Shown here piece after piece: positions 18,999 to 62,042 of a stretch of DNA of 64,000 nt; within the stretch, counting starts at the first letter, position 1, and each line of letters begins with the position of its first letter. The notes beneath the pieces are model-generated. The model saw only the letters and a program-made list of their open reading frames with translations, had not been told where the DNA came from and searched no databases. A program made the translations under genes and the position numbers. This DNA comes from Podarcis muralis (Eukaryota): positions 46,376,001-46,440,000 of the forward strand of contig NC_135673.1 of the NCBI RefSeq assembly GCF_964188315.1, in the 5' to 3' direction.

Positions 18999-19074
18999 TT
19001 ATTCATCTGAATCCAGATCACTATCTCCTGCAATGGAAGGGAGGTCGTCACTTTCTTCCTCGTCCTCGTGGCTA
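18999..19074 (-). CDS. TAF1: TAF1-like terminal exon (shortened exon 38 homologue)
   Basis: tttctttcttttccag|T AGC CAC...: [24 protein letters not shown], matching the TAF1 C-terminus. Confidence 0.9.
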
Positions 19075-22000
19075 CTGGAAAAGAAAGAAATCTCATGATG
19101 CTGTTGTTATTTATCATGTGTACTGAGCGTGGGACAAACTTAGAAAGATGATAGACCGATGCTAGCTGTTGTTGATATACAAACTTTACAGCAACACAAG
19201 TGTGAGATGCAGCTGGGCATGTCATCTTCCTAATCCAATTCTAACAGCTAAGGGAGTCAAACAAGGTTGCATATTGGCCCCCTTTTTGTTTAACATTTAT
19301 TCCCTTAGTAAACATCTTCGAGGGACAGATATACATGGCCCAAAAGGCAGATAAAATGTTGCCTCTCCTGCTTTATGCAGATAATGCTGTCATCCTGTTT
19401 CAGACACAAATTGGCCTTAAGATGGCTCTTAAGAAACTAGTCCAACACTGTATGGAGGATCAATTAGCAGTAAACTACCAAAAAACAAAAGTCATGGTTT
19501 TCTCCAATAGAAGGAAAACCTACAGATGGTGCATAGATAACCAAGACATTGAACAAGTCACCTGTTTCAAATATCTAGGGGTTGTATTTCAAGCTTCCAG
19601 AAAGAAAACTGCCCATATTAATCACACTTCCTCTATGGCCCAAAAAAGTACTGCAGCAATCTTAACATTCCATTGAGCAAAGGGAAGAAATTTTTATTCC
19701 AGCTGCTATCAAACTATTTGCTGCAAAATCCATAGCGTGCACAACTAGTCCCCCTCTCTAATCTGGACCCCTATGAAAAACTAAAACCAGGATTCCCAAG
19801 GTCAATTCTCCAAATCCCTAAATGTGTCCCCAATGCAGCCCTGTAGACTGGAGATGGGCCTAAATAGGACTGAAGCCGAAGTGTGGCTAGTTACTCTGTA
19901 CACATGGCTAAGACTTAATAAGACCTCAACTGGGCTGCTCTCTTTGACATTGATTGATAATTATCAAATAAAATGGTGGAAGGGCATCACAAGAAAACTG
20001 GCTTTATATGGCCTTTCTCCTGAATATATTTTAGGTCTGGAAATGGGAAGAAGTATAATTAAAGAACGAATCTGGGACAGAGAATTCCAAAATTTGTAAA
20101 TTTTTACCCAAACTTCAAAGATCCTATCCAGCAAATTATTTAAGTGCACTGGACAACTCTAAACACTGTTGGGCATTCTCCAGAACCTGCTTTAATGTTC
20201 TCCTTTCAGCATTATTAGCGGGCAGATATCATGACATCCCAGTCCAACAGAGATTATACCCATGCAATTCTGACGAGATTGAATCCACTGGGCCCATTCT
20301 TCTATATTGTCCACTGTATCATGATACCCAAAGAGAGCTAATTCAACGGTTACTAAGGAAATTACCTGGCTGCTCAGAGGAAACCTATGTTAAATATCTT
20401 CTTGCTGACAAAAGATCCGAATATCACCAGGCCTGTCGTGAAATTCTGTTTTATGGCAACAAGGACAAGACAGGCTGCAGTGACAGTGATAGTCGATGAA
20501 TGAGTACTGATTTTAAACTCTGGAACATAGGTTTTGGCTGAAGGAGTGCTATTTTAAATGCAAATAAGCTTATAGGGAATTTTCAAGGGGCAGACACAGT
20601 AGACAAAATTGTTCCTGTTGTTAATTCTGCTGTCTGGACTTTGACCTCAATAAAGAAAATAAGTTCATGTGTACTGAGCACTGTACAGAAGAGAAACAAT
20701 ATAGTGAAGGAAAACACGAAAGTGTGACACATTGCAAATGCAGAGGAGCATTCACTTGGTCCTTCTCTGAACATTTTTATCACCACAAGAGCATGGTTTC
20801 TGATTTGTTAGGAATGTAAGAAGAGCCTGGCTGCCAGATCTAGTCCAGCATCCTGTTCGCACAGTGGCCAAACAGATGCCTATGGGAAGCCCGCAAGCAG
20901 AACATGAGCACAACAGCAATGCTCTTCCCAACTCCAATTCCCAGCAACTGGCATTCGGTAATGCCTCTTACCCTTGTGGCAAGTAGCCATGGATAGACTT
21001 TTCCCCCATGAATCTGTCTGATCTTTGAACACCATCCAAGTCATCTCATTTGCGCAGTCATCCTTCAAGGTGTGCATCTGGTGCAGCAATACCACCGCAA
21101 CCCTGCCACTCAAGACTGCTTCCATCAGAGGCAAGATTGCTGTGTGGAAGGTGGTTATGGAAGCATTGCAGGCAGAATCAGATGCAAATGGTGTTAAGAG
21201 ACTGGACATTTTAGCATCAGAATGAACCTTTCATGAGCAGTGCTCCAAGGCAACTGCATAGGTTTAATCCTGCATGGCAACATCATAGAATCATGGAGCT
21301 GCATTGTTGGAAGGGACCCCAAGGCTCATCTAGTCCAAACCCTTGCAATGCAGGAATAATATTATTACTCCCCTCATGAGATGAATGTGTGCTGCCGCAC
21401 TTTCTATTTTTCTGTATGTTCAAGAACTAATCCACGTAAATGTTTAAAGAATAGGGAAGACTAATCCTGCTCATGACTGCTTATGAATCACATCTACAAA
21501 GAAGCCAGGATTGGCTCATGGGGGTTACTACTAAAGTTGTGATAGCATGTTTTTGTTTGGTGACTGATGGCATTGCAGCAATTGAGAAATGAATTGTTTA
21601 AATTGTTTTAGTTGCTGTGCTTTATGTTAATTTTAGATGTTTGTTGTTGTTTTCTGCTGGGCTTTTTCTTGCTGTGTGAGTTCCCTCCCCAACCCCCACT
21701 TTGGATTTAGAGTTTAATGGTGTACTGCATTTCACATTTTCTTGTATGAGCATACTGCCCAGAGAACTTGGTTGGATGGGTGGTATGAAAGTGTAACCAG
21801 TTAACAGAAGAGCAGTAAAGAACAGGGAGGCCCACAACTCAAAGGCAACTCATAAGAGTCATCTGAACTGAGCGCAGCCAACCTGCTTTTGAGACAACCA
21901 AACACTCCTTAATGGCTCCAACAGCACACTTGTCTATGGTTACCTGGCACTGCTATACTCCATGGCATGTGAAATCTTCCCTGCTGCCTCATACGACATC

Positions 22001-25000
22001 ATGCTGTCTTTGTTGTCTTTGTCTATTTGCACATTCTCTTGAAGAACACAAGGCTGTCTCGGTCCCACTGCAGAGGATCCTGCACCTGAATCTCTGCTAC
22101 TTTCACTTTGCTGGATTGCTGCACAACAGGACAGAAAATGGGTAGCCATAATAAAGTTACCCAAGCCTGTTTTATCCCCCAGGTCACCTGCAAATGGCTC
22201 CAAGGATATTGCTCTCCTTTGAGTAGTTTTGTCATCCTTCAGAAGGTGGCTAAATTGCAGTTCAAATAAGAACCTCAAAAGCATTTTGCATTTGAACAAA
22301 GTCAGCCACTGGAAAAGTTAGTGCCATATGATAAACTAGACTAGAGGAAGCTTTTGCAGTCTGGGGTCCCCCATTCTCACATGGAATCTTCCATTCATGT
22401 GTACTATATTTCCGCCATCCTCAGCTTTCCTTTCTCAGCATTTAACAGCTAGGCATCTCCGATAATCATTTGCTCTACTGCAGAGGCAGTAAACTTTTAA
22501 GTCAAAAGTTTGATTCCCCCGAGAGAAACTGGTGGGGAAGAGTCTACTGACAATGGGGAGGAGCCAAAGCTGAAATCGGAAGAGTCTTCATCTGCATGCT
22601 CTCCCCTGCTTCCAATCATTCACACATCCCTATGGCCCCTTGAATACTTATTCTCCCCATCCACACATAGTCATTTCAGTCACCATTCATCTTATCTCTA
22701 CCCTCCCCATCCCCACTGCATGACAATTGGTCTTAGAAAAGAAATGTCACAAATGGGACCCTTTTTTAAGCCAAGTTGTCATGCAGGGAGCACAATTTTA
22801 AGGCTCTGCAGCATGTGGAGATGGGAGCATTACTCCACCCCTCCTTACATTCTAGCCCCCACCCCAAAGAAGCCCCCCCCCATGTGTTCTAGAGTGGTTT
22901 TCCCCTAATCCTGCATTAGGACGAGAGGGCTGCTACCCCCTACTGCCAAAGAAAAAAACCTCTACCCCATCAGCATAGCAATTAGGCTTAGAGGGGGAGA
23001 GGTTAATAACCACACAGGGGTACAGAAGAGGAGATGGGGAGTGGGCAGATCCAAAAGGCTCTGTGGATTGGCTAGGAACATCTTGCCCCTGGTTTAAGCA
23101 AGCTAGGAAGAGAAAAGAAGTGAGGAGTCTTGGCTTAAGATGCTTCCTCACTAACCACAAACTTCAACCAAGGACAAACTCTGGCAACAGCTTGTGGTCA
23201 GTTTGCATGGTCCTGGTAAGCCACAGCAACTGAAAGGAATGTACATTTGCCTGAATTCACAAGCGTTTGCTTCTTGCTAATAGCCAAAGGACCACAGCAC
23301 AATGGCAGAGCACCTGCTTTGCACGCAGAAGGTCCCAGGTCCAATCCCTGGCTGATCTGGAGCCCTTGAAACCACTGCCAGCCAGTGTAGGCAACCATGA
23401 GTTAGATGGAGCAATGGTTTAACTCAGCGCAAGGCAGTTTGCTATGTAAAGAGTGAAAACTTACGTGTGAAAGTGTCATCGTCTTCCTTGCCACTGCTGT
23501 CACTCTCCTCGTTATCTGACAGGGTCACGTCTTCATAATGCATGCTGGCCTGAGGCTGCTGCACTGAACCTTCTTCCTTTTCACCCAGGTCTCTGTTTTC
23601 ACCTTCCACTTTCTGTCACGATGGAACAACCAATGGTAGAAAGGAGGTTGCAGAGAATTTCCTGGCACATGCAGAAGGTAGCTAGCTAGCTGCTCTCTAA
23701 AAATGGCCCTGGCAAACTGAAGTGGTTTCAGAAATAAACCCAAGTGCCTGCATCACCAGCCGCACTAGTACTTGCTTCTGCAGTATTTTGCAGCAAGCAG
23801 ATGATTTGCAACCACCTTGCACACAAGGTTGCTCTACTCATCTATACTCACAACAACCTTGCAGAGTGAGTGAGGCAGAGTCAATGATTTGCCCAAAGTC
23901 AGTGGGAATCTGAGCCTCCAGCAGTGAATAAAATAATGAAACATCACATGATGTTAAAAGCTGTGGAACAGAACACTTCTGTTATGGGCAAGACGGAGGG
24001 CAAGAATCAGAGTAGGCAATGCTGCCTGCTAAAGTAGCCAGGAAGGGCCTAGCTGACCAATGGGCTCTTTCCCAGCCAGATGGTCTCCCAGTGCTACTAG
24101 GCCCAGCATGGAGGTGTGGCTCAGAAATCTAATAAAGCAGAACAACATAGGCAGGGTTGAGTCAGAAAGAAGCACATACATTATCCCTGCTGCAGCCACC
24201 ACCCCAAACTGCAGCCACAGGCCTTGATGCCAGAAGAGGGTCCCTGAAAAGAGAGCTTTGGCAAGAAGCCTCACCTGGGGCATACAGGGCTGAGAGATGG
24301 TTGGGCCAAAGCTCTCCAGGTCTGCCTCCTCTAAGACTGCTTTGTTAACAGCAGAGATATCCTTCTCAAGCTGGGTCAAGTGCTCATCATACTGAAGAAG
24401 CAGAAAGACAGAGAAAGCAAGTGTTTGCTGAAGAATTGAAAATGGTCCTTGGCAGCATTGGCTTGCTGGGCCACCTACCTCTCCTAGTGCCTTGTAACAG
24501 ATGTCCACCATCTCTTCAGCTGTTTTTGTGTTCTGGCTGTCAGGACCTGAATTGGAAATACAAACAAACAAACCACATCTCCTTAATGCTGCTCCTTAAG
24601 ACCTGAGCACACAAGAAAGCCACAGGAATAAGCAACCCACTTCCAAGTGGTCATCTTCAGGGCCAAGTTCCATGCTTCCTTGTGATATGCACCCAGAGCT
24701 TTCCAAAGCTTTGCCAAGTTCACTGGTGGCAACCAAATGTGGTATTCTTCAAAGGCTCTCGTCCCTGCAGAACTCCTTAAGGTTTCCCTTAAGCTCTGAC
24801 CATGTAAGACTCCTGAACCTCCCCTCCCCCAAGCACATTTTAAGAGGCCCTGAGATTTTAATCAAAACCAATACTCTAGTCCATGAGCAGGTAATCTTTC
24901 AAGGCCTGTCTACCAATTCCCGCTCCCCAGGGCCATATGCCTGCAGTGGAAGTGAGCATTGCACACTCTCAACATGCACACCAGACATTCAGTCCCTCCT

Positions 25001-28000
25001 CAGCTAATCAACACAAACCAGCTAGCTTGAGGAGAGGACCCCCCCCCCTTTCCACCCAATCAAATGATCTATCTGATAATGTGGGAAAGAGTAGGTTGCA
25101 TGTCCACCAGGGAGCTAGACTCAGTGGAGAGAATTAAAAGCTCTCTGGCTTTCTCAGCGCGGTGACTGCCCCTTTGCTACCAAAATTGGTGGGATCTTGG
25201 GGGACAGAAAAAATTGCTGGGTGGGGAGGACAGATTAGAAGCCCCAGACTGGGGATTAACCAGCCCTCCTCTATTCTGTTCATGCCTGCTCACAAAGCAG
25301 TATTGGACCCCAAGAGCTGAAGAAGCTTAACAGAAAAGTCCCCAGAAGAAGCAATTTTCATCAAGGGAACTAGCCACATTTTGGAAAAGCATACATTAAT
25401 GTCTTAATGAGTAGATGTGAAGTCACATTCAGGTCTTGTCCTTATTGCTGGCATCTGTCTGTCTCAAGAGACGATGGGGTATGCCTCCGGGGATAAAGAC
25501 AAACTGCTTCATTAGCAGCATCAAAGTGACCTCCCTGGAGAGCAAGCCTGGGCAGTGTGTCTGGAGGTCCTGGGCTACCCAGTTGGCAAGACCTCTCTCT
25601 CAGCCTCGCTGATGTGGTCCAAAGGAAAGCAGAGCAAGATGTTTGGCACCAGCTGGGCTGCAGGAGTTGCCAGAAGGAGGCTTACAAGATGCCATCTAAC
25701 TGCCATCCAGATTTGTGTAGGGTTTACTCCTTAGCCTTTTCTTCTTGCAAAGGTGCCCCACAAAGCCCTGATAACTCTCTGTAAATGTGAGTCAAAGGGC
25801 TGCAGACATGGCAAGGAGCCAAGAGGGTCTCTTACCATTGTATTTAATGCTGTTGGCAAGGATCAGTTTCACGTCATCCATAAAGACTTCTCGGTTCTGG
25901 TATTTATGTCTGGAGATGTTCTAGAATGAATGAATAGGAGACAAGATGGGAATGTGAAGCCTTAAATATGAATTCTTGATTCTGGCATACAAAAAGTCTG
26001 AAGTGGATCCTTTACGAGGACCCTTTCTTCCTTACACTTCACTAATATTTTGGAGTGTCCTGGTGATTCCTTTCACATATAGAACTGCTTCTCCCCATCA
26101 CAACCTCCCTGGTTGCTCAACATGACCCAAGCCAGAGTTACAAAATACAGCACATGTCTTTGAGTTATTTATTTTCCCCATGACTTTTTGGCCTCCAAGT
26201 CAACAGCTGGTGGCTGAGATTAGGCAAGCAGAATTTCTTCACCCTCAGCCCACATTTCCATATTCCAATTCTATTCCTGGTATTTTATCTGGGATTTAAC
26301 ATGCTGCCATCAACCTTGGGCCTTTTCTGCCAAGGCTTCTTCTATTTCATTTAACTAAATGTATACATTGCCTGATTGTAAGAAAACCTTGAAGCAGTTT
26401 ACAAAAGACAGTTCTGAGAAGCTGCAACATAAACCAACAACAGCTGCACCCTTCAAAGTTTGCACCTTGCTGATAGTCCTCAGGTCCATCGGGCTGACAA
26501 TGACTTTGTAATATTTTGGCACGCGTCTCCTGTTTACAGGACGGAAAAAGAGCCTGGCCTGCAAGCAAAAAGAGGGTAAAAAGATAATGAGCAAGCAAGT
26601 CTTGCACGGTGAATTGCATGCTGGATCCAGTATCTGCATAAGACACTGAAAAGCTTTTGTACAACATCAAGCTGAATCTAGAGGGAACATCCCATTATCT
26701 GCCAACAAATCCTAAGTCCTCTGGAGGTGCCTGGATTCTACTATAGCATTTTCGTCAAACCCAAAGTAAGGTACTCCAGAGCCAGATAATTTTGGAGCTG
26801 TGCAGCATCAGCATTTGTTAAATGCAGTGCTGCTCAAATACAGCTCAGGAAGCATATACAGTGGTACCTTGGGTTACAGGCGCTTCAGGTTACAGACTCC
26901 GCTAACCTGGAAGTAGTACCTCGGGTTAAGAACTTTGCTTCAGGATGAGAACAGAAATCGCACAGCGGCAGGCCCCATTAGCTACAGTGGTACCTCAGGT
27001 TAAGAACGGTTTCAGGTTAAGAACGGACCTCCAGAACTAATTAAGTTCTTAACCCGAGGTACCACTGTAGTCCCACCATCCTGCTTGCACAGCAGCCAAG
27101 TGGAGGCCAGTGGAAGGCCCCAAAGGAAGACATGAGTGTAACAGAAACGATCCCCACTTGTGATTCCCAGCAACTGGTATTTAGAAGTGGAGGTAGAACA
27201 TAGTCATCGTGGCTAGAAGTCACTGGTAGCTTTGTCCTCCAAGCACAAGGCTACTGTGACGGTCCCCTTTTCCACAAGCTCTTTTCCATCGCCACCAATT
27301 GCTAAGGGCAGACATACATGAGGAACAGCCTTTATCTTCTGGGATACAATCTTGTCCAGAATATAGGAGAAGGTCGCTTGATGAACATCATCCAGAAGGC
27401 GATTAATTGCCTTTTCCAAACGAGCCAGTTTATCTTCCTTCTGAAAGGACACCGAGGTACAGAAACACACTCAGCTCCAGAGCAACTCCTTTATAGCAAC
27501 CCACTTTTTGCTGAACACTGCTCAATGGCAGAGCACCTGCTTTGCATGCAGAAGGCCCTGGGTTCAATCCTTGGCATTTCCAGGTAGAGCTGTGAATGCT
27601 TCCTACCCGATACCCTGGAGAGCTAAATGAGTTAAGATGGAACAATGGCCTGCCTCAGTATGGGGTGGTTTTCTATGTGCCTACTGTATTTTTATTGCTT
27701 ATGTAATTTCAAGAATATATTTCAACATCTTCTGTTCCTATCCAATTACCGGTAGTTCAGGTTTTAAAACAGAAGGCATTCACACATATCCCATCTTTAT
27801 TCATAAGGAAAGTCAGCTACAACTCAAAATCTCCAGCAATTTGGGCTGGTTTTGTCACATGCAACATGGCCCATAAAAGAAGCTTATTGTTCACATTCTC
27901 TCAGTTACCTGGAACTGTCTTTTTTCATTTTCACTAATACCACTATTATTAAAAAGCACTACATTCCAGTTTTAAAAATTTTTATAGTTAAAATAAGCTG

Positions 28001-29863
28001 TAGACAAACAAGATCATGTTTTACCATTAAATAAATTGGTGTCCTTTTTGGAGAAATGTTTTTTTTCAACAACCAAAAGTTTTGTTGTTTGTGTTCATAT
28101 TTTGTGTGTGATTCTGATTCTGATTCTGTCCTTCCAGCAATAAGTTTTGTTTAATTAGATAATGACCATGGAATCTTTCTCACCCACAGCTAATACAACA
28201 TTCACAATCTGTTTGGAAATCTATGCTGCACTTTCAAATTCAGTAACTTTCAGTTAAAATCCAGAAACCAAAATTAGTATTGGATAGTAAAGTCACCATT
28301 CGAACTCTACCACTAAAAACTATTAAATCAAGAGAGCAGGTCCTATGCTCAGCTCCTAATGCAAGCATCCAACAAACCACTCTGGCTGCCTTTAGTCCTT
28401 TCAAGAGAGATCTCCCTTCAGTCCAGAATCACCAAACTGTTTATGCAAACAGCTCAGCCCTAAAAGTACCCTAAGTGGCTAAGCAACGCCCTTACCTCCA
28501 AGCCACAAGCAACCCCTCCCTCCACAATCTGACTTGCCTCTTTCAATTTTTGATCACCGAAGTCCAGCATTGACTGAGCAATCTGAGTCAACTTGTGCTC
28601 TGGCCCTGCAAACACAACAGCAGAAACCTTTATTGTGGGATGGTGTTGTTGTGAGCTGTCTTGACAAAAGGCAAGTTACACATTTAAGATTACATGTGGT
28701 TAAGTTGGTCCCGTTCCCCAGTGGTATGGAGAGCTAACTTGGAGACTCATCAGAAGTCTCAGAGAGCACACACTTGATTTTACATCCAACTGGTGTCCTC
28801 CAGATGTTTTAGACAGAAATTCCCATCAGCCCAAGTCAACAAAGTCACACTGAAGTTGCAGTCCAAAACATCTGATGGGCATCAGATTGGCAAAGGCTGC
28901 TCCACGGTGTGACGGCAATTGAGAAGCAGCCAGCAAAGCAATGCTTTTATTTTGCTCCATTCCCACTGTCCCCAAGCTGCTGGGAGATCATGGCCCCAGA
29001 GGAAAGGAGCAGGTATCACAACTCTTCCTTGGTAGTCCAGAAGGACTAGTTCTAACTGAAATCACTCAAGATAGATGAGGTTTTTTCTTAGCAGGTCCAG
29101 TTGAGAAATCAGACAAGGGAAAGAGAAGCAGTCACACTGAGAGCAAAAGAAACCAGGAAATTACAAAGGGGAGCATGCAGGCAACTTACAAATATATAAG
29201 GCCATCCGTCAGAGAAATAACTGGACACCTAGTGAAGACAGGACGATCACCAGAAGGTTTAAAGAAGAAAGTAGGCCACAGTGTAAAGTAGGTGAGCATC
29301 AGAAGGAAATTCCCCAGCACAAGGTAGCCTTACAGAGCTATGCAGAGATGGCGAAATTTACTGGAAGAATAAAAGATCAAGATGAGAGACCTTTTTTTTA
29401 ACAGAATGGGGGTAGATTGTTGAATATATGAAGACAAATTGTAAACAATTAAAAACTTCAGCAGGGTTGATGTAAACACGAGCAGTAAAAAATAACTTAT
29501 AGAGAGGAAAAAGATAAAATTTATAAATAGGCTGGAATTGGTTATGCAGTAAGTCTGTGACATGAAATAAGGAGCAGTAGAGAGGAGGGGAGGGAAGTCG
29601 AAGAAAACGTTGATTTTTGTTTATGTTTAACTTTTTTTGTTAGAAACATTGTAAAATGAAAAATTGGAAAAATAAAATATTGGAGGTTTTGTTTTTTTAA
29701 AAAGATCAATACTTAAAAGCCGCCCTTTGCCTAGCCCATTCCTCCTCTTCCCTTAACATCCTCAGAAAGAGCACCAGGTCACTGCCCCAGTTGCCGTAAC
29801 CTGTTTTTTGAGGCTGGGACACTTTGCACAAGGAGGGAAGAAAGAGCAGAAGAGAAACAGTTC

Positions 29864-29910: not shown

Positions 29911-30836
29911 GAAAATAAACTCTCACCATTGAATGTGGCACTGTTCTTCACAATCAGCTCCAGGTGCTCTCGGAATTCTTTGCTTGATTTGTAAGAGAGC
30001 TTATGGACATTCTGGCGCAGGGTGTACAGGTCCATTGGTCGGCTGATGATCTTGCGATAATTTCTGACACCCCTCCTGCTAACAGGCTTGTGGAAGTAAC
30101 ATGTCTGGCAGAGGTAAACCGGGAAAGAATGTGAGCATCCCTTTTATTTCTTAATATACCACCCTCCCTTAAGTTACCAGGGATGGATACAACAACATGA
30201 AAAAAAACATTTTTTTAAGACAAACAAACAAACCCAGATAAAGCCATTTCTTTGTTCACCTGCCAAGGAGAGAGGGCAGATAATGAAACCCGTCTCCCTC
30301 AAAAGGGCCACTGGAGCCATTTCAAGGAAGGGGAGTCCACAACCTCTCGAGGGAGTCTGTTCCACTGTCAAGTAGCTCTTGACTGTCAGAAAGTCTTCCG
30401 GTATATTTAGTCAGAATCTCCTTTCCTGCAACTTGAAGCCATTGGTTCAAGCCTTGCCTTCCAGAGCAAGAGAAAACAAGCTTGCACCCTCCTCCATGTG
30501 ACAGCCCTTCAGATATCTCCTCTCAGTCTCCTCTTTTCCAGGCTAAACATGCCCAACTCCTGTTAGTATTTCATTCAGCCGATGCTGCAAAACGTGACTG
30601 GTGTAAATCACATGCCTGTCTGAGAAGACTGTGGAAACGGAAGACAGCCTGACCTCTCTTCCGTTGTATGTACTTTGTAATGTACTTTCACAATTAATAT
30701 TTTAATGTTTCAATATTTTAATGTTGTATTTTAATTTTGTTTTTAAGTTGTAATCATTCAACTTGTTTTTATTATTGCTTGTAAGCCGCTCTGAGCCTGG
30801 CTTTGGCTGGGGAGGGCGGGCAGGGTATAAATAAAA

Positions 30837-30881: not shown

Positions 30882-33800
30882 TTGGTTGTTCTCTCGGAGC
30901 TGTAGAGAATGGTCACCATTATATTGTAGTCTGTATATAGTATGTAAATAAATAGTAGCTTAGATCTACAATGTCTCACTCTTCTTGTTGTGCTATGCCA
31001 GAAGATTAGTGTGCATATATCAAGCTGATATATGTCACTGAGCGCCCTGGAGAGGAAGGGAGATGCCTTTTCCAGTGCTGCACACACTGGAGGATGTTCG
31101 GAGTTCCGGGGGTTAGCAGGTGACCCCAGCCGCACTGGACCAGGCCCATCTTTTTAGGCAACTGTGGTGTGCTTGCTGCAGGAAGGCAGGATATAAAGCA
31201 TTATGTTTCCCCCTATGCTCAGCCAGGAAGGCAACTGACGTCCAGAGGTAGACTTAACCACCTCTTCTTTAATTATTATTGCATTTATACACCACCTTTT
31301 TGCCAAGGCATCCAAGGCGGCCCAGGGTTTAAAATATGAACGCAGTTAACACCAACAAATGGCACAAAATCTTATCAGGCCAATTTCAGGGGCTGATGGC
31401 ACTAGCTCCCTGGCCTGGGCTTCTCCTCTTCTGGCCTGATTTGCAGCCACTGGTTGACCTCTCTCCCTTTTCCTCCATGAGAATTTTTCTGATCCCCTTT
31501 GAAAGCTGCTGACACCAATAATACATTTCAATGTATGATTCTGATACACAGCACTTTTCATACACCCCACTAAACAGAATGTGAGCTGTCGAAGACTGAG
31601 CCCACAACTCACGGAGTAGAGCTTGGCAGGAGGTGGAGAGGCAACATCCTCGAAATAGCAGAAAGATTGCCCTCAAATGCTCAATGCTGATATGAGACAA
31701 GAATTTCTCAAGGAACTAGCTCTCCTGATATATGGATAGGATAATGCCCCCTTGTCTTTGCGCATGACATAGAGCCAGAAGAGGCAAAATCAAACCTCAC
31801 AGGTGAAAAGGTCTTACATTTGGAAGTTCTTGCATTTCGTTGATAATGCCTTCCAGGATATAAGACAGTATCTCTATGGGGGGTGTGCTCCCCTGGTGGC
31901 TGGACTTCTGAGGCTGCTGAAAGAGAGAGAAGTGGGACGTTAAAGGCACTTCCAAAGTTTATGTATGATGGACTTTTGGGGATCTTGACAAAGGGCACCT
32001 CAAAGCATCTAATTGGTCTCTACTTTTTTGGGGAGGAGTTGCCCTTTGGCTGTTCCTGGTCTATAGTGAACCAGCCCTGGCTGAGGCTTAGAATAAGCAC
32101 TTGCTGTTGCCACCATTTCCAAGATGGATAGTGGGCAAGGGCAAGGGGTGGGGTGGGGGCAATGAAAGCAACACAAGGACTCACGTTTAAGGAGCTACAA
32201 GCAGCCGTGGTTCCAGAGCCCTGTTCCTTCTTTTGCAGAAACTGTTCTTTTCTGAACTTCAGGACTAAAGACTTCTTGCGAACTTCATTCGCGCTGCAAG
32301 GAGAGAGAGGGAGGAGAAACACGCTGCAGTTTCCACCACCTCTCCCTCCAGTGGGCCCAGCTGCCCCTCTGGGAGGGACTGATTAAACCATAAAGAGCAC
32401 AATATGAAGCCCATTTGCTCTTTTATTGGGTCTAGTCTGGGGTAACTGGAGCTGTAAGTTGAAGAACTTTAACCCCCATCAGCCCACACAGCAGCCTGCT
32501 GCTTCATTTAGATTCAGTGGTACTACCTGTCCTACACTGTACACCAGACAGTTGCTGCTCCTGTGGATAATAGTAAATGGTATTTAGCAACTTGTTATGA
32601 ACTGTTGTGTTCTTATTTTTTAAGGCTTGTGTGATTTTACGGTGTTATGGGTTTATTTGATCTTCCTGTAAAATTCATTGTGGCTTGTGCAATGGCTGGT
32701 ATATAAACCAATGACCCCAATGACTTGAAACCGTCTTGGTTGCGGGACCTCTTTTTGGGAACAGCCTCACCAAGCACATCAAAGAGGCATATTTGCTGAT
32801 GTAAGCACTTTAGGTAAAAATGTTTCTTTTCTGCAAGGTTTTTGGCTGATGGGGCCATGCAATTGTGTCGTTCTTTATCTCCTTGACATCTGTTGGGAGG
32901 GCATTCCACAGGGTGGGCACCACTGTCAAGAATGGTTCCCTTCTTGTAGTGAGGGAACCAGCAGAAGACCCTCAAAGCTGGACCTCAGTGTCAGAGCTGA
33001 CGATGGGGATAGAGACGCCCCTTCAGGTATACTGGACCGAGGCCTGTATACCTTTAGGGCTTTAAAGGTCAGCACCAACACTTTGAATTGTGCTCAGAAA
33101 TGCACTGGGAGCCAGTATAGATTGTTTAGGACTGGTGTTACATGGTCCCGGCAGCCACTCCCAGTCACCAATCTACTGCTGCATTCTGATTAGTTGTGGT
33201 TTCTGAGTCACCTTCAAAGGTAGTCCTGCACAGACCTATGCCAGTCTGTGAGAAAGACTGGAGTATTGGGCACTTACTACCAGATATGTGTGGGAGTCAT
33301 CCAGAAGACAATCAGTTAATACAGGTGCTGGATTTTCTCTCCGTTTTGGAATACGTGGCCCTGTCTGGCCCGGGCAATGACAAGGTGTTCACCCACTGCC
33401 ACATGTGGATGACTTCCACACGTCCACAGGAAGGGATTTCAACTCTTCCACCTTGTTCTGGACTTCTTAATTTAGAGGAAAGTGAGCAAGAGATCACATG
33501 ATGTAAGTTTATAGCATTATGCATTGAATGGGGAAAGTGGATGGGGAAAGTTTCTCTCTCTCTCATAACGCTAGAACTTGTGGTCGTCCAATGACATTTG
33601 AATGTTTGGAGATCCAAGACGGATTAAAAATAAGTACTTCTTCATGAAACACATGGTTAAACTGTGGAACTCACTCCCACAGGAGGATGGCCACCATCCT
33701 GGATGGCTTTAAAAGTGGACAAATGCAGGAAAGGCAATACTGTCAATGGCAGCAACGTTTCTGAATACCAGTTGCTGGACACCACCGGAGGAAGAGTGCT

Positions 33801-36072: not shown

Positions 36073-36126
<54 letters not shown>

Positions 36127-37419: not shown

Positions 37420-37462
<43 letters not shown>

Positions 37463-38494: not shown

Positions 38495-38540
<46 letters not shown>

Positions 38541-44500: not shown

Positions 44501-47500
44501 CTAAGGAGGGATCTAAATGATTCAGGCCTCAAATATCTGAAAGACCACCTCCTTCCCACAGAAGGCCTCTTGGTTGTTCCACTGCCTTCAGAAGCTGGGG
44601 GGTGGGGGCGTTTCCAGGATAGGGCCTTCTCTGTGTTAGCCCCTAAGTTGTCCACAGAGGGGCATCTGGCACAGTTTGGTGAACGCTCGATTCACCTCTC
44701 TTTGACACTTGTATATTTTTAGGACTCACCTTATTTCTGAAATTTTGTTTCAAACTGTTTTTAACATTGGGTTTTGATTGCTGTAACCTGCCCTGGGACC
44801 CTGGGGTAAAGGGCAAGTAAGAAATTGTAATCATCAGCAAGCCTTGGGAGGAGCATACAAAACTTTCCGGGAGACATTTGGGGTTTCAGGCAGCCCCCTG
44901 GGACAGCAACAAAGCTAATGGATATTCAGAGCCTGGAAAAAAGCACCAATGGGGCTCAAATGAAAACGGGAGCCGTTATGAGAGCCCTTTTGTCTCTCAT
45001 CCTCAGGCAACAGCGGAGGTGGCTCAATCTGCTTCTGCCATCCCCCTCGTTGCACATAGCTGAGTCTGTGCCTTCAGTACGGATCCACTTGGCAAGAAAT
45101 GGGGGCACTTGAGTATCATGAAGACTTGAAGCTCGAGCTGTGCAATATCACCAAACCCAACAATGAGAAGCTGGTGGTGATCACTGGGCAGCAAGAGCCC
45201 CAGTGAACAAATGCCTAAGTTCTGTGTGTCACATCCATATAAGGTTGCCTTGTCCAGAGTGCTTTTTCTGTCCTATTTTATTTGCCTGTGATTCTGGGAA
45301 GGGGAAATGAACAATAAGGCTGCATACTTGATAGGCAGCACTGCCCTAGCCCAAACCTAGGGAAGAACTGTTCAGAACACCAGATAACACATCCGCCTCA
45401 TGTGAATCCGCATCCGAGATATTGAACAAATATTTTTTCCTCTTGAAGGCAAGTAGCTAATCCTGATGCATTTGACTCTCCTTGGTTTCCATTTGTTTCT
45501 TTTGTAAACATGAACATGCAGAGCATTTGGCCTTCTAGAGGGCAAGGGGTTATTTTGGAAGGACACTTGTGTTTCTGTGATAATGAAAATTTGTCAGTGC
45601 CTTCAGCTAAGCTTCTTGAAGGAGGAAAACAACCTTGCAATGTGAATTGGGGAGGGAAGAGTGTCTTAGTTGTGCATGACCTTGTTTCATTTTGCAACGG
45701 TAAGTTTTATTGTATGCTATTTTGGAAAATACTAAAGAACAATTTAAAAAAAAAATCAATAGTCTCAAGCAAGTGAACCAAACTACAAAAGAGGGCAATT
45801 ACTTTGAAGTTACTAGTGAACGTGAACCAATCCATTTTTGAGCTCAAATATGAACACAAAACTTTTTAACAGTCTGCCCTCTTGCACAAGCCCATATGTC
45901 ACAGCTGCAACAACACTCCATTTTCCCTGAGCTTACTGCAGAGCTAATAACTTGCATAACCCACAGAAGACAAACCTGGAGAAAGTCTCGAATGTGAGCC
46001 TTGGCACGTTTGGAGTTGGGTTGAGGAACTTCAAAGAGAGGACATTGCTGTCCAACCACAAAGATATCCTGCAAATCCCGGATGTAGTAACCATTCTGAT
46101 CCTGGATAACTAAGAAGTCTGTTTCCGGCATCTTGTGACGATAAATCGGAGCCCGGAAGAGATTGTTTTCAAATGCCTGTCAAAAGGAAAGGGGCTACCT
46201 TGGTCAACTGCAACAGGAGTTAGGGAAAGAAAAAGAATCCAACATGACCTTACAGACCAGCTTTAGTCCTTGAGACATACAGTCAAACCTCGTTTTGCGG
46301 ATGGGATCTGTTCTGGAGGATCTGCACGTCGAAATGCCGCATCTGCACATGGGGCGATTTAGCGCTTCTGCGCGAGTGGCGACCCTGGAAGTAACCCATT
46401 CCGGTACTTCCAGGTTTGCCACAGACATTCGCCAAAGCGGAAGCAAGCGGAGGCGGATGCAGGATGAGGATGGGATTCTCCATCAAACCCAAGAGACAGT
46501 TGATACACAGCAAGATCAAAGGCGTACAAGCAGTGCAAGCTCACTACCCACACGCCAAGTCACCTTCCATTTTCCAAAGGTGACCAAAGTGCAAAACATT
46601 AGAAACAGCAAATGTACTGGCTGCTTGCCTTCACACAGTTCACTGTGGCACTCTCTGAAGTCATGGGCCAGAGGGAATACTGGATGCTGTCCATGGGTGG
46701 GACTGCCATGAACAAGTTGTTCGCCCCCCACCTTCCCAGGTATCTGGCCTCTGCTGGTACCTTGGGGAGAAGCACTCACACCCAGAGGACAGACTCCCTA
46801 GCCATGGAAGAATTCTCCACCGCAACTCTAATGACCAAGTCCAAGCTTTTATTGCAAGTGTCTGAGAGTTTTGGCAGAAAGCATTCCTGCCTTCTTTTAG
46901 ACATCTTCAGAAAGCCATACAGGTGACTCACATCTTATGCTTATTTTACTTACGAGGTTGTGGCTTTGGAGAGGTACGGGGAGCAAAATGAAAAAATGGA
47001 AAGTGGAGGAAACCCACTCTCCGTTTATTTATTTCCCCCCTGCACAGCTGGGGCCGCAGGGAAGGCATCACAAGGACTCTGGCAGTGCCCAAGAGCCCCT
47101 GTGCCTTCTTGTCACGAGCCAGGAGTCAGTTTCGCCTGCTGAACAGCAGCCTGGAGAAGGAGAAGGTGGAATGTCTGCACCTGTAGCTGATCAGCCTTCA
47201 AGGACACAGAGAAGGCACTGATGAGAATCAGCTGGCTTCAGCCTTTTTAAATAGAGCTCCCAGTATCAGTAGATGCTGGAAACAATGCCTGTGGTGCCTG
47301 GCCTTACCTTGCTGCTTCCTGCTCTCCACCTGGGCTCTGTAATCATCTGCTTTCCCTGATCTCTGGACTGTCTGACTTCATATGTGGATTCTCCTTTCTG
47401 GTAAGTATTCCTCAGAGACTCCTAGTCCTTGCTTGGCTCAGCAACAGGACTCATACGGGCTATGACATGCCTCCGCAAAGCCCAGCACCTTGGCTTACCG

Positions 47501-61309: not shown

Positions 61310-62042
61310 TTATTTATATCCCGCCCTTCCCAGCCAAAGCTGGGCTCAGAGCGGCTAACAACAGTAAAAATAGCAGAGTTTACATAAAATCACAGTCAAT
61401 TAATTGAAATACATTCTAAAATCAATTCAGTCATGGTAAGTAGCCACTGATTGCCTCATCTTCCATGGTCTGGCCGTGTGAAAGAAGGTTGTCCTTTGGC
61501 TAGCCAAGCCTGAGACATATTTGCAAGTGATGACTTCAGACAGAAAAATATGAAAGAATCCAAGGGAACTAGCCACTTTCTCTTTTTAAAAAACCTTTTC
61601 CCTATTCCCCACAGCTGAGACACCTGCTATGGGAATGGAAAGGCCTAGGGCTAAAACATCCAATTAATGCAATCTTCATTACCATCAGCTCCTGTAACAG
61701 GGGCCAAGGTGGGCAGAGCAATGGAAAAGCTTACTATGCAAGACTGACTCCGTTGATAAAATGTTTACCAGGAGCAGAAACCAGGGTTGCAATTATTAAA
61801 GGTATAGGACTCTAAAGAAGAAGAGCAAGAGAGAACCAGCACGGACATCAGGGCAGCAGGAACCAGCTTGATTAGAAAAAGATCAGTTATGCCAAAGGCG
61901 ACAGAGGAAACCATCTGCCACCGCTTACCTGCCCTCACAACTAGCTGAGGGCTGCATACCGCCTGCCCACTGTGGACATCATCTTCAACCAGCTCGGTAA
62001 TGTCAGAATAATCAACAGCATTGTCATTACTCTTAACCCAGC
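18999..62042 (-). CDS. TAF1: Divergent TAF1-like (TFIID subunit 1 family) gene, 5'-incomplete; homologues of exons 3-34 and 36-38, about 1,660 codons
   Basis: 35 exons in the same order and intron phases as vertebrate TAF1. They cover the DUF3591/TAF7-binding core, winged helix, RAPiD region, zinc knuckle, two bromodomains and the terminal [12 protein letters not shown]. Exon lengths sum to 4979 nt with no frameshift or internal stop found. Confidence 0.95.
19150..20480 (+). mobile_element. RTE/RTEX-like LINE fragment, degenerate
   Basis: [44 protein letters not shown] and a degenerate C-terminal Cys motif. Confidence 0.8.
20810..21210 (-). mobile_element. CR1-type LINE 3' fragment
   Basis: Reverse complement of the family at 11440-11795 / 33700-33915. 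Confidence 0.65.
21944..22118 (-). CDS. TAF1: TAF1-like exon 37 homologue
   Basis: [43 protein letters not shown]...; donor AG|gtaacc. Confidence 0.9.
23465..23612 (-). CDS. TAF1: TAF1-like exon 36 homologue
   Basis: [49 protein letters not shown] (cf. [24 protein letters not shown]). Confidence 0.88.
24275..24391 (-). CDS. TAF1: TAF1-like exon 34 homologue
   Basis: [39 protein letters not shown]. Confidence 0.94.
24479..24546 (-). CDS. TAF1: TAF1-like exon 33 homologue
   Basis: [23 protein letters not shown]. Confidence 0.94.
25836..25920 (-). CDS. TAF1: TAF1-like exon 32 homologue
   Basis: [28 protein letters not shown]. Confidence 0.95.
26466..26558 (-). CDS. TAF1: TAF1-like exon 31 homologue (bromodomain 2 ZA loop)
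   Basis: [31 protein letters not shown]. Confidence 0.94.
26859..27067. mobile_element. pogo/Tigger-type (Tc1/mariner superfamily) MITE
   Basis: TA|CAGTGGTACCT...AGGTACCACTG|TA; near-identical sibling at 34572-34789. Confidence 0.9.
27318..27440 (-). CDS. TAF1: TAF1-like exon 30 homologue
   Basis: [41 protein letters not shown]. Confidence 0.95.
28538..28605 (-). CDS. TAF1: TAF1-like exon 29 homologue
   Basis: [23 protein letters not shown]; GC donor GAG|gcaagt. Confidence 0.92.
29080..29705 (+). mobile_element. Adjacent CR1 fragment (about 29080-29325) and L1 3' end (about 29325-29705)
   Basis: CR1-like cactgagagcaaaaga...caaatatataagg; L1 ORF2 end [13 protein letters not shown] and an A-rich tail. 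Confidence 0.65.
29862..29912 (+). repeat. (GAAA)n microsatellite just downstream of the exon 28 donor
   Basis: Direct reading. Confidence 0.95.
29927..30104 (-). CDS. TAF1: TAF1-like exon 28 homologue (bromodomain 1)
   Basis: [59 protein letters not shown]. Confidence 0.95.
30170..30570 (-). mobile_element. CR1 LINE fragment
   Basis: Reverse strand encodes [27 protein letters not shown]; sibling at 55255-55612. Confidence 0.8.
31818..31916 (-). CDS. TAF1: TAF1-like exon 27 homologue
   Basis: [33 protein letters not shown] (cf. [33 protein letters not shown]). Confidence 0.9.
32185..32293 (-). CDS. TAF1: TAF1-like exon 26 homologue
   Basis: [36 protein letters not shown]. Confidence 0.92.
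32780..33915. mobile_element. L2 fragment (-, about 32780-33200) abutting a CR1 3' fragment (+, about 33200-33915)
   Basis: L2 [16 protein letters not shown] on the minus strand; CR1 fragment with gttaaactgtggaactcactcccacagg. Confidence 0.75.
33975..34171 (-). CDS. TAF1: TAF1-like exon 25 homologue (zinc knuckle)
   Basis: [19 protein letters not shown]...[14 protein letters not shown]...[17 protein letters not shown]. Confidence 0.96.
34572..34789. mobile_element. pogo/Tigger-type MITE nested in a CR1 fragment
   Basis: TA TSD, TIR CAGTGGTACCTCGGGTTA; interrupts the CR1 RT sequence [21 protein letters not shown]...[11 protein letters not shown] (about 34455-34830). Confidence 0.9.
35336..35480 (-). 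CDS. TAF1: TAF1-like exon 24 homologue
   Basis: [48 protein letters not shown]. Confidence 0.9.
35545..35830. repeat. Tandem palindromic MITE remnants (gggagctgtagtcc family)
   Basis: Internal arms of the 44363-44498 type (caactcccatc...gatgggagctgtagtccaac) repeated; related piece at 38040-38110. Confidence 0.6.
36073..36125 (+). repeat. (ATT)n microsatellite
   Basis: Direct reading; other (ATT/AAT)n tracts at about 30838-30882 and 61258-61308. Confidence 0.95.
36521..36740 (-). CDS. TAF1: TAF1-like exon 23 homologue
   Basis: ...[43 protein letters not shown]; phase-compatible acceptor tttcccctgcag at 36741. Confidence 0.9.
37421..37505 (+). repeat. (CTTT)n/(CT)n polypyrimidine microsatellite
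   Basis: Direct reading. Confidence 0.9.
38200..38369 (-). CDS. TAF1: TAF1-like exon 22 homologue
   Basis: [27 protein letters not shown]...; donor T|gtgagt. Confidence 0.9.
38498..38537 (+). repeat. (CA)n microsatellite
   Basis: Direct reading. Confidence 0.95.
38633..38808 (-). CDS. TAF1: TAF1-like exon 21 homologue
   Basis: [18 protein letters not shown]...[31 protein letters not shown]. Confidence 0.96.
38904..39017 (-). CDS. TAF1: TAF1-like exon 20 homologue
   Basis: [38 protein letters not shown]; tandem AAG-CAG acceptor, so the start could be 39020. Confidence 0.93.
39341..39490 (-). CDS. TAF1: TAF1-like exon 19 homologue
   Basis: [50 protein letters not shown]. Confidence 0.96.
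39555..39905 (+). mobile_element. L2 3' fragment
   Basis: Same family as 1-441; further copies at about 30690-30882, 44505-44835, 50425-50785 (+) and 61258-61430 (-). Confidence 0.8.
39977..40087 (-). CDS. TAF1: TAF1-like exon 18 homologue (extended acidic insert)
   Basis: [37 protein letters not shown]. Confidence 0.93.
40882..41091 (-). mobile_element. 5'-truncated Squam3-like (MIR/CORE-type) SINE inserted in a hAT MITE (about 40825-41185)
   Basis: (CTT)n plus poly(A) tail; 16-bp TSD ATCTCCCATCATTCCT (40866-40881 / 41092-41107). Confidence 0.8.
41953..42225. mobile_element. pogo/Tigger-type MITE, second family
   Basis: TA|CAGTGGTACCTC...GAGGTATGACTG|TA; related partial copy at about 46279-46460. 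Confidence 0.82.
42255..42465 (-). mobile_element. MIR/Squam3-like SINE, old
   Basis: caacaaccctgttaggtag...aaggtcacccagtgaacttcatggctgagtggggacttgaacc; similar copies at about 4075-4290 (+) and 23800-23915 (-). Confidence 0.7.
42616..42746 (-). CDS. TAF1: TAF1-like exon 17 homologue
   Basis: [43 protein letters not shown]. Confidence 0.95.
43328..43634. mobile_element. pogo/Tigger-type MITE, third family
   Basis: TA|CAGTGGTGCCCCGCAAGACG...CGTCTTGCGAGGCACCACTG|TA; internal GCAAGACGAA and AATAGCCGCTAAGC repeats. Confidence 0.9.
44116..44254 (-). CDS. TAF1: TAF1-like exon 16 homologue (winged helix)
   Basis: [46 protein letters not shown]. Confidence 0.93.
44363..44498. mobile_element. Palindromic hAT MITE
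   Basis: 136-bp near-perfect inverted repeat CAGTGTTTCCCAACCTTGGG...CAAGGTTGGGAAACACTG; 8-bp TSD CTCTAAGG on both sides. Confidence 0.93.
45976..46176 (-). CDS. TAF1: TAF1-like exon 15 homologue
   Basis: [24 protein letters not shown]...[28 protein letters not shown]. Confidence 0.96.
47665..47769 (-). CDS. TAF1: TAF1-like exon 14 homologue
   Basis: [35 protein letters not shown]. Confidence 0.95.
47858..48031 (-). CDS. TAF1: TAF1-like exon 13 homologue
   Basis: [58 protein letters not shown]. Confidence 0.96.
48165..48730 (+). mobile_element. L1-clade LINE 3' fragment
   Basis: [11 protein letters not shown]...[13 protein letters not shown]; homologous to 17490-18490. Confidence 0.75.
48848..49021 (-). 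CDS. TAF1: TAF1-like exon 12 homologue (DUF3591)
   Basis: [33 protein letters not shown]...HIEKKAK. Confidence 0.95.
49428..49535 (-). CDS. TAF1: TAF1-like exon 11 homologue
   Basis: [36 protein letters not shown]. Confidence 0.95.
49632..49756 (-). CDS. TAF1: TAF1-like exon 10 homologue
   Basis: [42 protein letters not shown]. Confidence 0.92.
50182..50259. repeat. Inverted compound microsatellite (TG)n-(CA)n
   Basis: About 38 nt of TG repeat, a GCGCGTGCAC centre, then about 34 nt of CA repeat. Confidence 0.95.
50924..51091 (-). CDS. TAF1: TAF1-like exon 9 homologue
   Basis: [26 protein letters not shown]...[11 protein letters not shown]. Confidence 0.93.
52427..52533. mobile_element. 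hAT MITE (107 bp)
   Basis: TIR CAGGGACGTCCA / TGGACATCCCTG; 8-bp TSD CTCTAAGC (52419-52426 / 52534-52541). Confidence 0.9.
53158..53350 (-). CDS. TAF1: TAF1-like exon 8 homologue
   Basis: ...[22 protein letters not shown]...AWLPSSMKT...QQ. Confidence 0.93.
53464..53658 (-). CDS. TAF1: TAF1-like exon 7 homologue
   Basis: ITMMAPVK...[30 protein letters not shown]; donor GAG|gtggg inferred from phase. Confidence 0.9.
53715..54820 (+). mobile_element. L1-clade LINE 3' fragment (about 1.1 kb)
   Basis: [12 protein letters not shown]...[15 protein letters not shown]...PESFLLG, followed by an AT-rich 3' UTR. Confidence 0.85.
55255..55612 (-). mobile_element. CR1 LINE 3' fragment
   Basis: [23 protein letters not shown] and a CR1 3' UTR (tagaatcttagagttggaagggacc). 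Confidence 0.85.
55740..55967 (-). CDS. TAF1: TAF1-like exon 6 homologue
   Basis: [19 protein letters not shown]...[14 protein letters not shown]. Confidence 0.93.
57458..57648 (-). CDS. TAF1: TAF1-like exon 5 homologue
   Basis: ...[32 protein letters not shown]; an alternative in-frame acceptor would start the exon at 57630. Confidence 0.88.
58089..58199 (-). CDS. TAF1: TAF1-like exon 4 homologue (strongly diverged)
   Basis: [37 protein letters not shown] (cf. ...[21 protein letters not shown]); phase 1-1. Confidence 0.75.
58564..60900 (-). mobile_element. L2-clade LINE, 5'-truncated, relatively young, interrupted by the U6 fragment
   Basis: ORF2 segments: endonuclease end (PWSDHYAL), [76 protein letters not shown]; (TTA)n tail at 58564-58590. 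Confidence 0.92.
60013..60053 (+). pseudogene. RNU6: 3'-truncated U6 snRNA retro-fragment (nt 1-41) with target-site duplication
   Basis: Exact match to the U6 5' end GTGCTCGCTTCGGCAGCACATATACTAAAATTGGAACGATA. Flanked by AAAGCCGATGTTTC (59998-60011) and AAAGCTGATGTTTC (60053-60066); no PSE/TATA context. Confidence 0.95.
61929..62042 (-). CDS. TAF1: TAF1-like exon 3 homologue
   Basis: [22 protein letters not shown]... (cf. [22 protein letters not shown]); ctccctag / gtaag. Confidence 0.9.

Follow-up and report, generated by a model that had tools for sequence, protein, structure and literature searches.

A divergent, intron-containing second TAF1 gene in lacertid lizards, a candidate scaffold for a variant TFIID

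TAF1 is the scaffold and the largest subunit of the general transcription factor TFIID, and it ranks among the most conserved large proteins of vertebrates. A stretch of 64,000 nucleotides from the lizard Podarcis muralis (NCBI RefSeq assembly GCF_964188315.1, contig NC_135673.1, positions 46,376,001 to 46,440,000 of the forward strand; hereafter the window) carries a TAF1-type gene whose product is strongly altered. Is this gene the only TAF1 of the species, a redundant copy on its way to becoming a pseudogene, or a second TAF1 with a role of its own? The original prediction, made from the letters alone, proposed an intact, fast-evolving squamate paralogue, possibly restricted to a tissue such as the testis. 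The results described here lead us to read it as an intact, transcribed second TAF1 that stems from a DNA-level duplication in lacertids, evolves fast yet under constraint, and is a candidate scaffold for a variant TFIID. We give this reading as a whole a probability of about 0.72.

Gene structure and paralogy

In a phmmer search of 1.8 billion representatives, with the exon at 45976-46173 (minus strand) as query, a single near-identical protein of full length came up (1,737 aa, P. muralis TFIID subunit 1 isoform X2). With this protein as guide, the gene model was obtained by tblastn combined with an exhaustive search for splice donors and acceptors. The window is free of Ns, and all its TAF1-like open stretches lie on the minus strand; a reading on the plus strand was dropped, since no TAF1 pieces were found there and the peptide search led to the minus strand. 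The part of the gene inside the window comprises exons 3 to 37 of 37 (18999-62042, minus strand), that is 35 exons with 4,962 nt in total, whose 1,653 codons are followed by one stop at the very end (18999-19001). This agrees with the 35 exons and about 1,660 open codons first proposed; the strand had been left unstated there. The predicted first exon in the window indeed begins at 62042 in phase 1, and the peptide quoted as an example of divergence (RRFAISEKQ...KRKKEK) was located at 35381-35479 on the minus strand. All intron borders are GT-AG bar one GC-AG, whose donor follows the 68-nt exon 29 (28538-28605).

The ATG and the TBP-binding TAND region are encoded by exons 1 and 2 (46 and 39 codons), about 2-4 kb past the end of the window. 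These two exons were read in the P. muralis assembly GCA_964188315.1, record OZ076968.1 (51,022,798 bp), at about 46.4 Mb (locus L001), which matches the reverse complement of the window at every one of 55,024 bases (100% identity). The complete gene has 37 exons, 36 introns and a 5.2-kb reading frame encoding 1,738 aa. Its translation is identical, letter for letter, to NCBI XP_028570735.2 (isoform X2), and twelve NCBI isoforms are annotated for the gene. RefSeq and Ensembl already list the divergent copy, simply as TAF1, and the L. agilis copy is labelled 'subunit 1-like'. The same RefSeq name thus stands on both lacertid TAF1 genes, which is an annotation problem. As a side observation, a comparison of the divergent protein between PodMur1.0 and GCA_964188315.1 showed 16 differing residues and one deleted residue among 1,738; this reflects either high protein polymorphism within the species or deep lineages within P. 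muralis.

A second, canonical TAF1 of P. muralis was found (XP_077773619.1). It lies on a record of 59,601,746 bp, as opposed to the 51.0-Mb record of the divergent gene, and has five Ensembl models. Canonical P. muralis TAF1 is 87-90% identical to the TAF1 of gecko, snake, turtle, crocodile and chicken; for the five Ensembl-derived proteins the range is 87-92%. The divergent protein matches it at 1,166 of 1,946 aligned positions (about 60%), and is about 60-63% identical to every other sauropsid TAF1 in the protein search. Other squamate TAF1 proteins are therefore not divergent in the same way. In that search, the tight relatives of the divergent protein came from P. muralis, P. raffonei, P. 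lilfordi and Lacerta agilis, so that the variant, first described as squamate, is seen among the sampled species in lacertids only (three Podarcis and L. agilis). The predicted unevenness of the divergence held up, with a per-exon identity of 32-88% to the species' own canonical TAF1. Calling some exons close to canonical was too generous, as canonical exons of squamates keep 95-100%. A platypus model also appeared, as a divergent hit, among the matches of the divergent protein; it does not represent another reptile paralogue. Identity between the platypus TAF1 models and canonical TAF1 is only about 65%, their composition is odd and their branch measures 1.75 substitutions per site; they are probably poorly predicted.

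The canonical TAF1 proteins of Elgaria and Anolis sagrei were threaded through their own loci, giving 40 exons each. Counterparts of 37 of these 40 exons are present in the divergent copy, in the same order and phases, with sizes that are equal or differ by multiples of 3. Moreover, the two genes have in common their sole non-GT donor, a GC after the 68-nt exon (canonical exon 30, divergent exon 29), and a weak relic of canonical exon 9 persists in the homologous intron of the divergent gene. The shared order, phases, GC donor and exon-9 relic indicate that the divergent gene is a DNA-level duplicate, as had been proposed, and exclude a retrocopy. Indeed, the gene keeps 36 introns at ancestral positions and does not show the intronless, processed state of a TAF1L-type retrogene.

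Two maximum-likelihood trees were computed under LG+C20 PMSF. The platypus model was included in the first, where it fell inside squamates as a long-branch and composition artefact, and was left out of the second. In both trees the divergent clade lay inside Squamata (support 99/100 and 100/100). Its stem had a length of 0.46-0.48 substitutions per site, as compared to 0.039-0.046 for canonical P. muralis, which branches off at the same node. Between this node and the P. muralis tip, change in the divergent copy adds up to about 0.59, roughly 15 times the canonical amount. The path between Lacerta and Podarcis inside the divergent clade was 0.19-0.22, indicating that the high rate continues. 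The duplication probably took place on the lacertid lineage, after its split from the other sampled squamates and before the split of Lacerta and Podarcis. Over tens of millions of years, the divergent copy has stayed intact.

Transcription, protein domains and selective constraint

RNA contigs from three studies (X1, X5 and X6) join 35480 to 36521, 36740 to 38200, 38369 to 38633, 38808 to 38904, 39020 to 39341 and 39490 to 39977, which are exactly the exon borders of the model. The junction ends read CT..AC on the plus strand, that is GT..AG on the minus strand. Individual exons in these contigs carry 0-3 mismatches against the divergent copy, and the canonical Elgaria orthologue is only 70-88% identical to the RNA-covered exons at the nucleotide level. 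With so few mismatches, the contigs derive from the divergent copy and not from the canonical gene. Raw reads (X23) contained the same junctions, with the strand bias expected for minus-strand RNA. The gene is thus transcribed, and its spliced RNA matches the model. Exons of the divergent copy were present in at least 22 RNA runs from the three studies, covering more than a dozen samples whose tissue labels are coded. The suggested testis restriction is not supported by this distribution, and restriction to any single tissue looks unlikely.

All four Pfam domains of TAF1 were detected in the divergent protein above their gathering thresholds, and every score was below that of the canonical protein (see table). 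The divergent protein can be aligned over its whole length with human TAF1 from cryo-electron microscopy entries of TFIID (e.g. PDB 6MZL). It also matches the TAF1-TAF7 complex 4RGW (E=1e-300) and the tandem bromodomain structure 1EQF (E=5e-114). About a third of the residues are changed. An alignment of five canonical TAF1 proteins, ranging from lizard to bat, has 1,382 invariant columns. Of these, the four lacertid copies all keep 910, share one fixed replacement at 233, and have variable replacements at 69.

The fixed replacements include residues lining both bromodomain pockets. In bromodomain 1, YPF is changed to CYF, DYY to NY(R/H) and YN to FN. In bromodomain 2, WPF is changed to RLF, PDYY to P(K/N)YY, and the gatekeeper Y to N. 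The acetyl-lysine-anchoring Asn of both bromodomains (FNG and YNG), the first Tyr of DYY and the C..C..H..C zinc ligands are retained in all four copies. In addition, the acidic tail is shorter, and other sequence stands in place of the poly-Asp stretch that follows TAND2.

In P. raffonei, P. lilfordi and L. agilis, the orthologous locus was compared exon by exon with the P. muralis gene. All exons and splice sites, including the GC donor, are kept in these three species (exon 1 of L. agilis lies outside L004, in locus L007, which extends further upstream). NCBI splits the L. agilis gene into models of 309 and 1,446 aa, although exons 2-8 map in frame. Each species comparison with P. muralis revealed six coding indels, all multiples of 3 (P. 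raffonei: -6, -9, +6, -3, +72, -3; P. lilfordi: -12, -9, +3, -6, +3, +72; L. agilis: +27, -9, -3, +45, +72, +12). As to the marks of an unprocessed pseudogene, no frameshift or broken splice site was found in the four species, and the one premature stop, in L. agilis only, is near-terminal.

The introns of the divergent gene served as neutral control. Between P. muralis and L. agilis, their Jukes-Cantor (JC) divergence was 0.088, with 8.7 indels per kb, 32% of them multiples of 3. The corresponding values between P. muralis and P. raffonei were 0.030, 3.3 per kb and 23%. Simulation of a coding sequence evolving neutrally gave 19 expected premature stops for L. agilis and 8 for P. raffonei; the probability of at most one stop was below 0.003 in both cases. 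Since the indels are all multiples of 3 and the expected stops are missing, the reading frame is clearly protected throughout the Lacerta-Podarcis period, yet constraint on the amino acids is weak. The ratio of non-synonymous to synonymous divergence (dN/dS, or w; Nei-Gojobori) was 0.32-0.64 in all six pairs, as compared to 0.036 for canonical TAF1 between Elgaria and Anolis. Values below 1 were supported at p=1e-4 for P. muralis against L. agilis and p=3.5e-5 for P. muralis against P. raffonei. Thus, a dN/dS near 1 without spliced transcripts, as expected of a recent pseudogene, was not observed. Constraint was strongest in the region before DUF3591 and in the DUF3591 core (w 0.27-0.51, significant; 0.44 for DUF3591). 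The N-terminus, linker, zinc knuckle, bromodomains and tail gave w of 0.7-1.05 between Podarcis and Lacerta, indistinguishable from 1 on these counts.

A fifth lacertid, Zootoca vivipara, was inspected on the 9.3-Mb record OY735920.1 (L009:17700-20576). Orthologous promoter and intron 1 sequence is present there downstream of the RhoG-like gene, with about 54 bp in place of the roughly 490 bp that contain exon 1 (ATG and TAND1). The 10 kb of sequence examined yielded no exon 2.

Starting from the observed gene structure, paralogy, constraint, transcription and splicing, a variant TFIID scaffold with altered chromatin reading would be the most economical account of the kept and changed parts of the protein. 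We propose the following course of events. A rearrangement breakpoint on the lacertid lineage would have duplicated TAF1; the slow canonical copy sits on a different chromosome. The divergent copy has evolved about 15 times faster, and selection has kept its reading frame, the splice sites of its 36 introns and the four TAF1 domains. The TAND region may still dock TBP, and the DUF3591/winged-helix core, as the most constrained part, may still dock TAF7 and promoter DNA; with both regions kept, the protein would be able to enter TFIID. Both bromodomain pockets carry substitutions fixed across the lacertids sampled, with the anchoring Asn kept, so that a TFIID containing this subunit might read chromatin differently or more weakly.

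Several observations weigh against this proposal. Entry of the protein into TFIID is deduced from its sequence. Canonical exons 9, 36 and 37 are absent from the divergent copy, and the best position of the divergent clade in the trees, as sister to canonical P. muralis, received weak support (63/78 and 50/77). Between Podarcis and Lacerta, the bromodomains and zinc knuckle show w of about 0.9-1.05, which means weak constraint, and dN amounts to 70-80% of the divergence in the gene's own introns. The length difference of +72 corresponds to a 24-codon deletion specific to P. muralis in exon 22; this exon has 242 nt in the other three species, as in the canonical gene. The reading frame is open in the three Podarcis, and in L. 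agilis a stop lies 20 codons ahead of the ancestral end (L004:47215-47290), truncating the tail. In Zootoca, where exon 1 seems to be missing, the copy may have been lost. Finally, as regards the chromosomal setting described below, Z linkage is argued from record sizes, gene content and the literature, and synteny in P. muralis was read at the divergent locus.

Some of these points favour the main rival explanation, namely a redundant, slowly decaying copy that lost most constraint once the canonical gene had taken over, is still transcribed through an inherited housekeeping promoter, has no function of its own and is becoming a pseudogene. To the deletion in P. muralis, the early stop in L. 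agilis, the apparent deletion of exon 1 in Zootoca and the closeness of dN to intron divergence can be added the w near 1 in the N-terminus and linker as well as in the bromodomains and zinc knuckle, the split NCBI model of L. agilis and the residue differences between the two P. muralis assemblies. However, the reading frame and the splice sites of all 36 introns are intact in four species at an intron divergence of 0.088. Neutrality predicts 8-19 premature stops and about 17-45 mostly frame-shifting indels, whereas no frameshift and a single near-terminal stop were seen. Overall w is significantly below 1, reaching 0.27-0.5 in the pre-DUF and DUF3591 core, and 77% of the sites changed on the stem are later invariant among the four species. 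Decay cannot account for the missing frameshifts and stops, and we consider it unlikely.

The fast evolution might also be due mainly to positive selection, for example through sexual antagonism or germline conflict on the Z chromosome, and not to relaxed constraint. Exons 26, 30 and 34 have w of 1.5-2.0. The 233 replacements fixed at sites that do not vary in canonical TAF1 from lizard to bat, among them coordinated changes of both bromodomain pockets in four species, and the probable Z linkage point in the same direction. But the counts per exon are tiny (1-15 differences), no region has w significantly above 1, and expression looks broad, not limited to the germline. This makes positive selection as the main cause improbable, and a fast-evolving yet constrained paralogue remains our preferred reading.

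Chromosomal neighbourhood and origin

In Podarcis, the gene order is mitochondrial-carrier gene, ITGB1BP2, RhoG-like gene, divergent TAF1 and HTATSF1; in L. agilis, it is RhoG-like gene, divergent TAF1 and HTATSF1. Canonical TAF1 of Elgaria and Anolis sagrei has the same RhoG-like gene on one side and OGT on the other. The RhoG-like protein adjoining the divergent copy is 99% identical to its Anolis counterpart, and about 2.6 kb downstream of the RhoG-like gene align with Elgaria as well as Elgaria aligns with Anolis. These matches place the divergent copy at the ancestral upstream address of TAF1. Homology to the canonical 3' side stops within the 3' untranslated region, and HTATSF1 (complete, 451 aa according to NCBI) follows downstream in the same orientation, 4.15 kb from the TAF1-like stop. 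The conserved TAF1 had been expected in an OGT/ITGB1BP2/NONO block. This was half right, as ITGB1BP2 adjoins the divergent copy instead.

The gene upstream of ITGB1BP2 (L010:1-6502) encodes a 309-aa mitochondrial carrier, in contrast to human, which has NONO at this place. NCBI also predicts ITGB1BP2-RhoG-like read-through products, among them a 606-aa model in P. lilfordi. The GC-rich stretch at about 14000-16500 of the window probably contains the CpG island of the HTATSF1 promoter.

The lacertid Z chromosome corresponds to chicken 4p (human X) plus chicken 17 (human 9q) (PMC6534595). In P. lilfordi, the Z is a scaffold of 50.7 Mb and the W measures 12.3 Mb (PMC10214862), and the Z of Darevskia has 45.3 Mb. 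The records bearing divergent TAF1 in the four lacertids have 51.0, 51.5, 51.1 (P. lilfordi) and 47.4 Mb. Judging from these record sizes, gene content and the literature, we think it quite probable that the divergent gene lies on the Z chromosome. That it is instead a W-linked gametologue of a Z-linked TAF1, or an assembly artefact or haplotig, could be thought of given the X-orthologous genes on lacertid sex chromosomes and the fast evolution of W copies, but is refuted: the gene already occurs in PodMur1.0, the first P. muralis reference, whose source animal was male (ZZ), its records measure 47-51 Mb as opposed to the 12.3-Mb assembled W of P. lilfordi, and the same locus recurs in four independent assemblies and in RNA. 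Likewise, the ancestral upstream neighbours and the plain RefSeq name 'TFIID subunit 1' would suit a translocated, fast-evolving single TAF1 orthologue, an explanation refuted by the canonical TAF1 of the same species and annotation on the 59.6-Mb record, with its five Ensembl models.

The second TAF1 could have arisen by a chromosome rearrangement whose breakpoint duplicated the gene. The ancestral upstream neighbours, combined with HTATSF1 in place of OGT downstream, fit such a breakpoint duplication, which we put forward tentatively. A more far-reaching scenario is speculative, and we hold it to be rather doubtful. During formation of the lacertid sex chromosomes, a breakpoint at TAF1 would have duplicated the gene, the OGT-linked copy moving to an autosome with the dosage-sensitive housekeeping role in both sexes, and the copy that stayed on the Z behind ITGB1BP2 and the RhoG-like gene being released from this role and re-tooled as a variant TFIID scaffold with rewired bromodomains. 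If true, this would be an 'escape from the sex chromosome' by an essential general transcription factor, accompanied by neofunctionalisation of the parental locus. Should Z linkage and the breakpoint origin both hold, the locus would offer a clean case of an essential, dosage-sensitive gene on a chromosome that turned into a sex chromosome.

Related paralogues and minor features

The divergent copy resembles canonical vertebrate TAF1 in domain order (TAND, DUF3591 core, CCHC knuckle, tandem bromodomains, acidic tail), in exon order and phases, and in the GC donor. It differs in being only about 60% identical, in its w of 0.3-0.6 as compared to 0.036, in its downstream neighbour, in the lack of exons 9, 36 and 37 and of the poly-Asp stretch, and in the rewiring of both bromodomain pockets.

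TAF4B, TAF7L, TAF9B and the testis TAFs of Drosophila are paralogues that build variant TFIID, with tissue-specific roles and incorporation demonstrated. Like them, the lizard copy is a long-retained duplicate of a core TFIID subunit and offers a plausible route to a specialised TFIID; unlike theirs, its role in TFIID is a prediction. To our knowledge, none of these TFIID paralogues is a DNA-level duplicate of the vertebrate TAF1 scaffold.

Another TAF1 duplicate is primate TAF1L, reportedly described by Wang and Page in 2002. It is an intronless autosomal retrogene of an X-linked parent, and its protein was seen in testis only (PMC6672047). In their 2019 paper, Antonova et al. name it as the sole TAF1 paralogue (PMC6672047). 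TAF1L and the lizard copy are both lineage-specific second TAF1 genes with a full domain set, evolving faster than the parent. In contrast to TAF1L, the lizard copy has 36 introns, the parental upstream neighbourhood and a probable location on the Z; it is present in many RNA libraries, far more diverged and of independent origin. A literature search for a TAF1 duplicate in lizards or lacertids, or for a Z-linked lacertid TAF1, found no paper describing one.

The locus represents a natural experiment, in which a full-length, intron-containing TAF1 was kept open and transcribed over tens of millions of years. It provides a map of the tolerant surfaces of TAF1: the bromodomain shelves tolerate change and the DUF3591 core does not. 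It also supplies a testable variant-TFIID candidate outside mammals and flies.

Table. Exons, domains and neighbour of the divergent TAF1 gene of P. muralis. Positions are those of the window, unless given in amino acids (aa) or profile positions; exons rest on tblastn and the splice-junction model, and identities are to canonical TAF1.
Feature	Position	Strand	Remarks
Exon 3	61929..62042	-	aa 86-124; TAND2-like motif; acceptor AG 62043-62044, phase 1
Exon 4	58089..58199	-	only 32% identical to canonical
Exon 5	57458..57630	-	gene model
Exon 6	55740..55967	-	gene model
Exon 7	53464..53658	-	gene model
Exon 8	53158..53350	-	gene model
Relic of canonical alternative exon 9 (intron 8)	52197..52286	-	outside annotated mRNAs; tblastn with Elgaria exon-9 peptide, 43% over 30 aa, E=6e-4
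Exon 9	50924..51091	-	gene model
Exon 10	49632..49756	-	gene model
Exon 11	49428..49535	-	start of DUF3591 (aa 532-1002)
Exon 12	48848..49021	-	DUF3591
Exon 13	47858..48031	-	DUF3591; best conserved, 88%
Exon 14	47665..47769	-	DUF3591
Exon 15	45976..46176	-	DUF3591; phmmer query exon
Exon 16	44116..44254	-	DUF3591
Exon 17	42616..42746	-	DUF3591
Exon 18	39977..40087	-	DUF3591; RNA joint with exon 19
Exon 19	39341..39490	-	DUF3591; RNA joints
Exon 20	38904..39020	-	DUF3591; RNA joints
Exon 21	38633..38808	-	end of DUF3591; RNA joints
Exon 22	38200..38369	-	P. muralis-specific in-frame 72-nt deletion; RNA joints
Exon 23	36521..36740	-	RNA joints; present in many RNA runs
Exon 24	35336..35480	-	contains the peptide quoted in the original prediction; 51% identical to canonical; RNA joint with exon 23
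Exon 25	33975..34171	-	CCHC zinc knuckle, aa 1228-1264
Exon 26	32185..32293	-	gene model
Exon 27	31818..31913	-	start of bromodomain 1
Exon 28	29927..30104	-	bromodomain 1: CYF shelf, NYR, FN
Exon 29	28538..28605	-	68 nt; GC donor, also in all four lacertid copies and in canonical exon 30 of Elgaria and Anolis
Exon 30	27318..27440	-	linker and bromodomain 2
Exon 31	26466..26558	-	bromodomain 2: RLF instead of WPF; PKYY
Exon 32	25836..25920	-	bromodomain 2
Exon 33	24479..24546	-	bromodomain 2: Asn of KYNG retained, gatekeeper Y to N
Exon 34	24275..24391	-	gene model
Exon 35	23465..23612	-	canonical exons 36-37 absent ahead of it
Exon 36	21944..22118	-	gene model
Exon 37	18999..19074	-	stop 18999-19001; acidic tail ...DSDLDSDE
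TBP-binding TAND (PF09247)	aa 20-69, exons 1-2 (outside window)	-	46.6 bits (cut-off 25); canonical 73.1
DUF3591 (PF12157; TAF7-binding, winged helix)	profile 1-443 of 444	-	490 bits; canonical 519
zf-CCHC_6 (PF15288)	aa 1228-1264	-	30.1 bits (cut-off 22); canonical 63.2
Bromodomain, two stretches	exons 27-33	-	137.8 bits in total; canonical 148
HTATSF1, downstream neighbour	1830..14850	-	ATG 14850; occupies the place of OGT in other squamates

Just past the window end (L001:10139-10300), intron 1 contains one further copy of its own beginning together with the final codons of exon 1 (…GEELFDEVGSSR…). Long open frames resembling the reverse transcriptase of long interspersed nuclear elements (LINE) were noticed on the minus strand at 58726-60789, in intron 3 of the TAF1-like gene, and at 12670-14151, in the first intron of HTATSF1.

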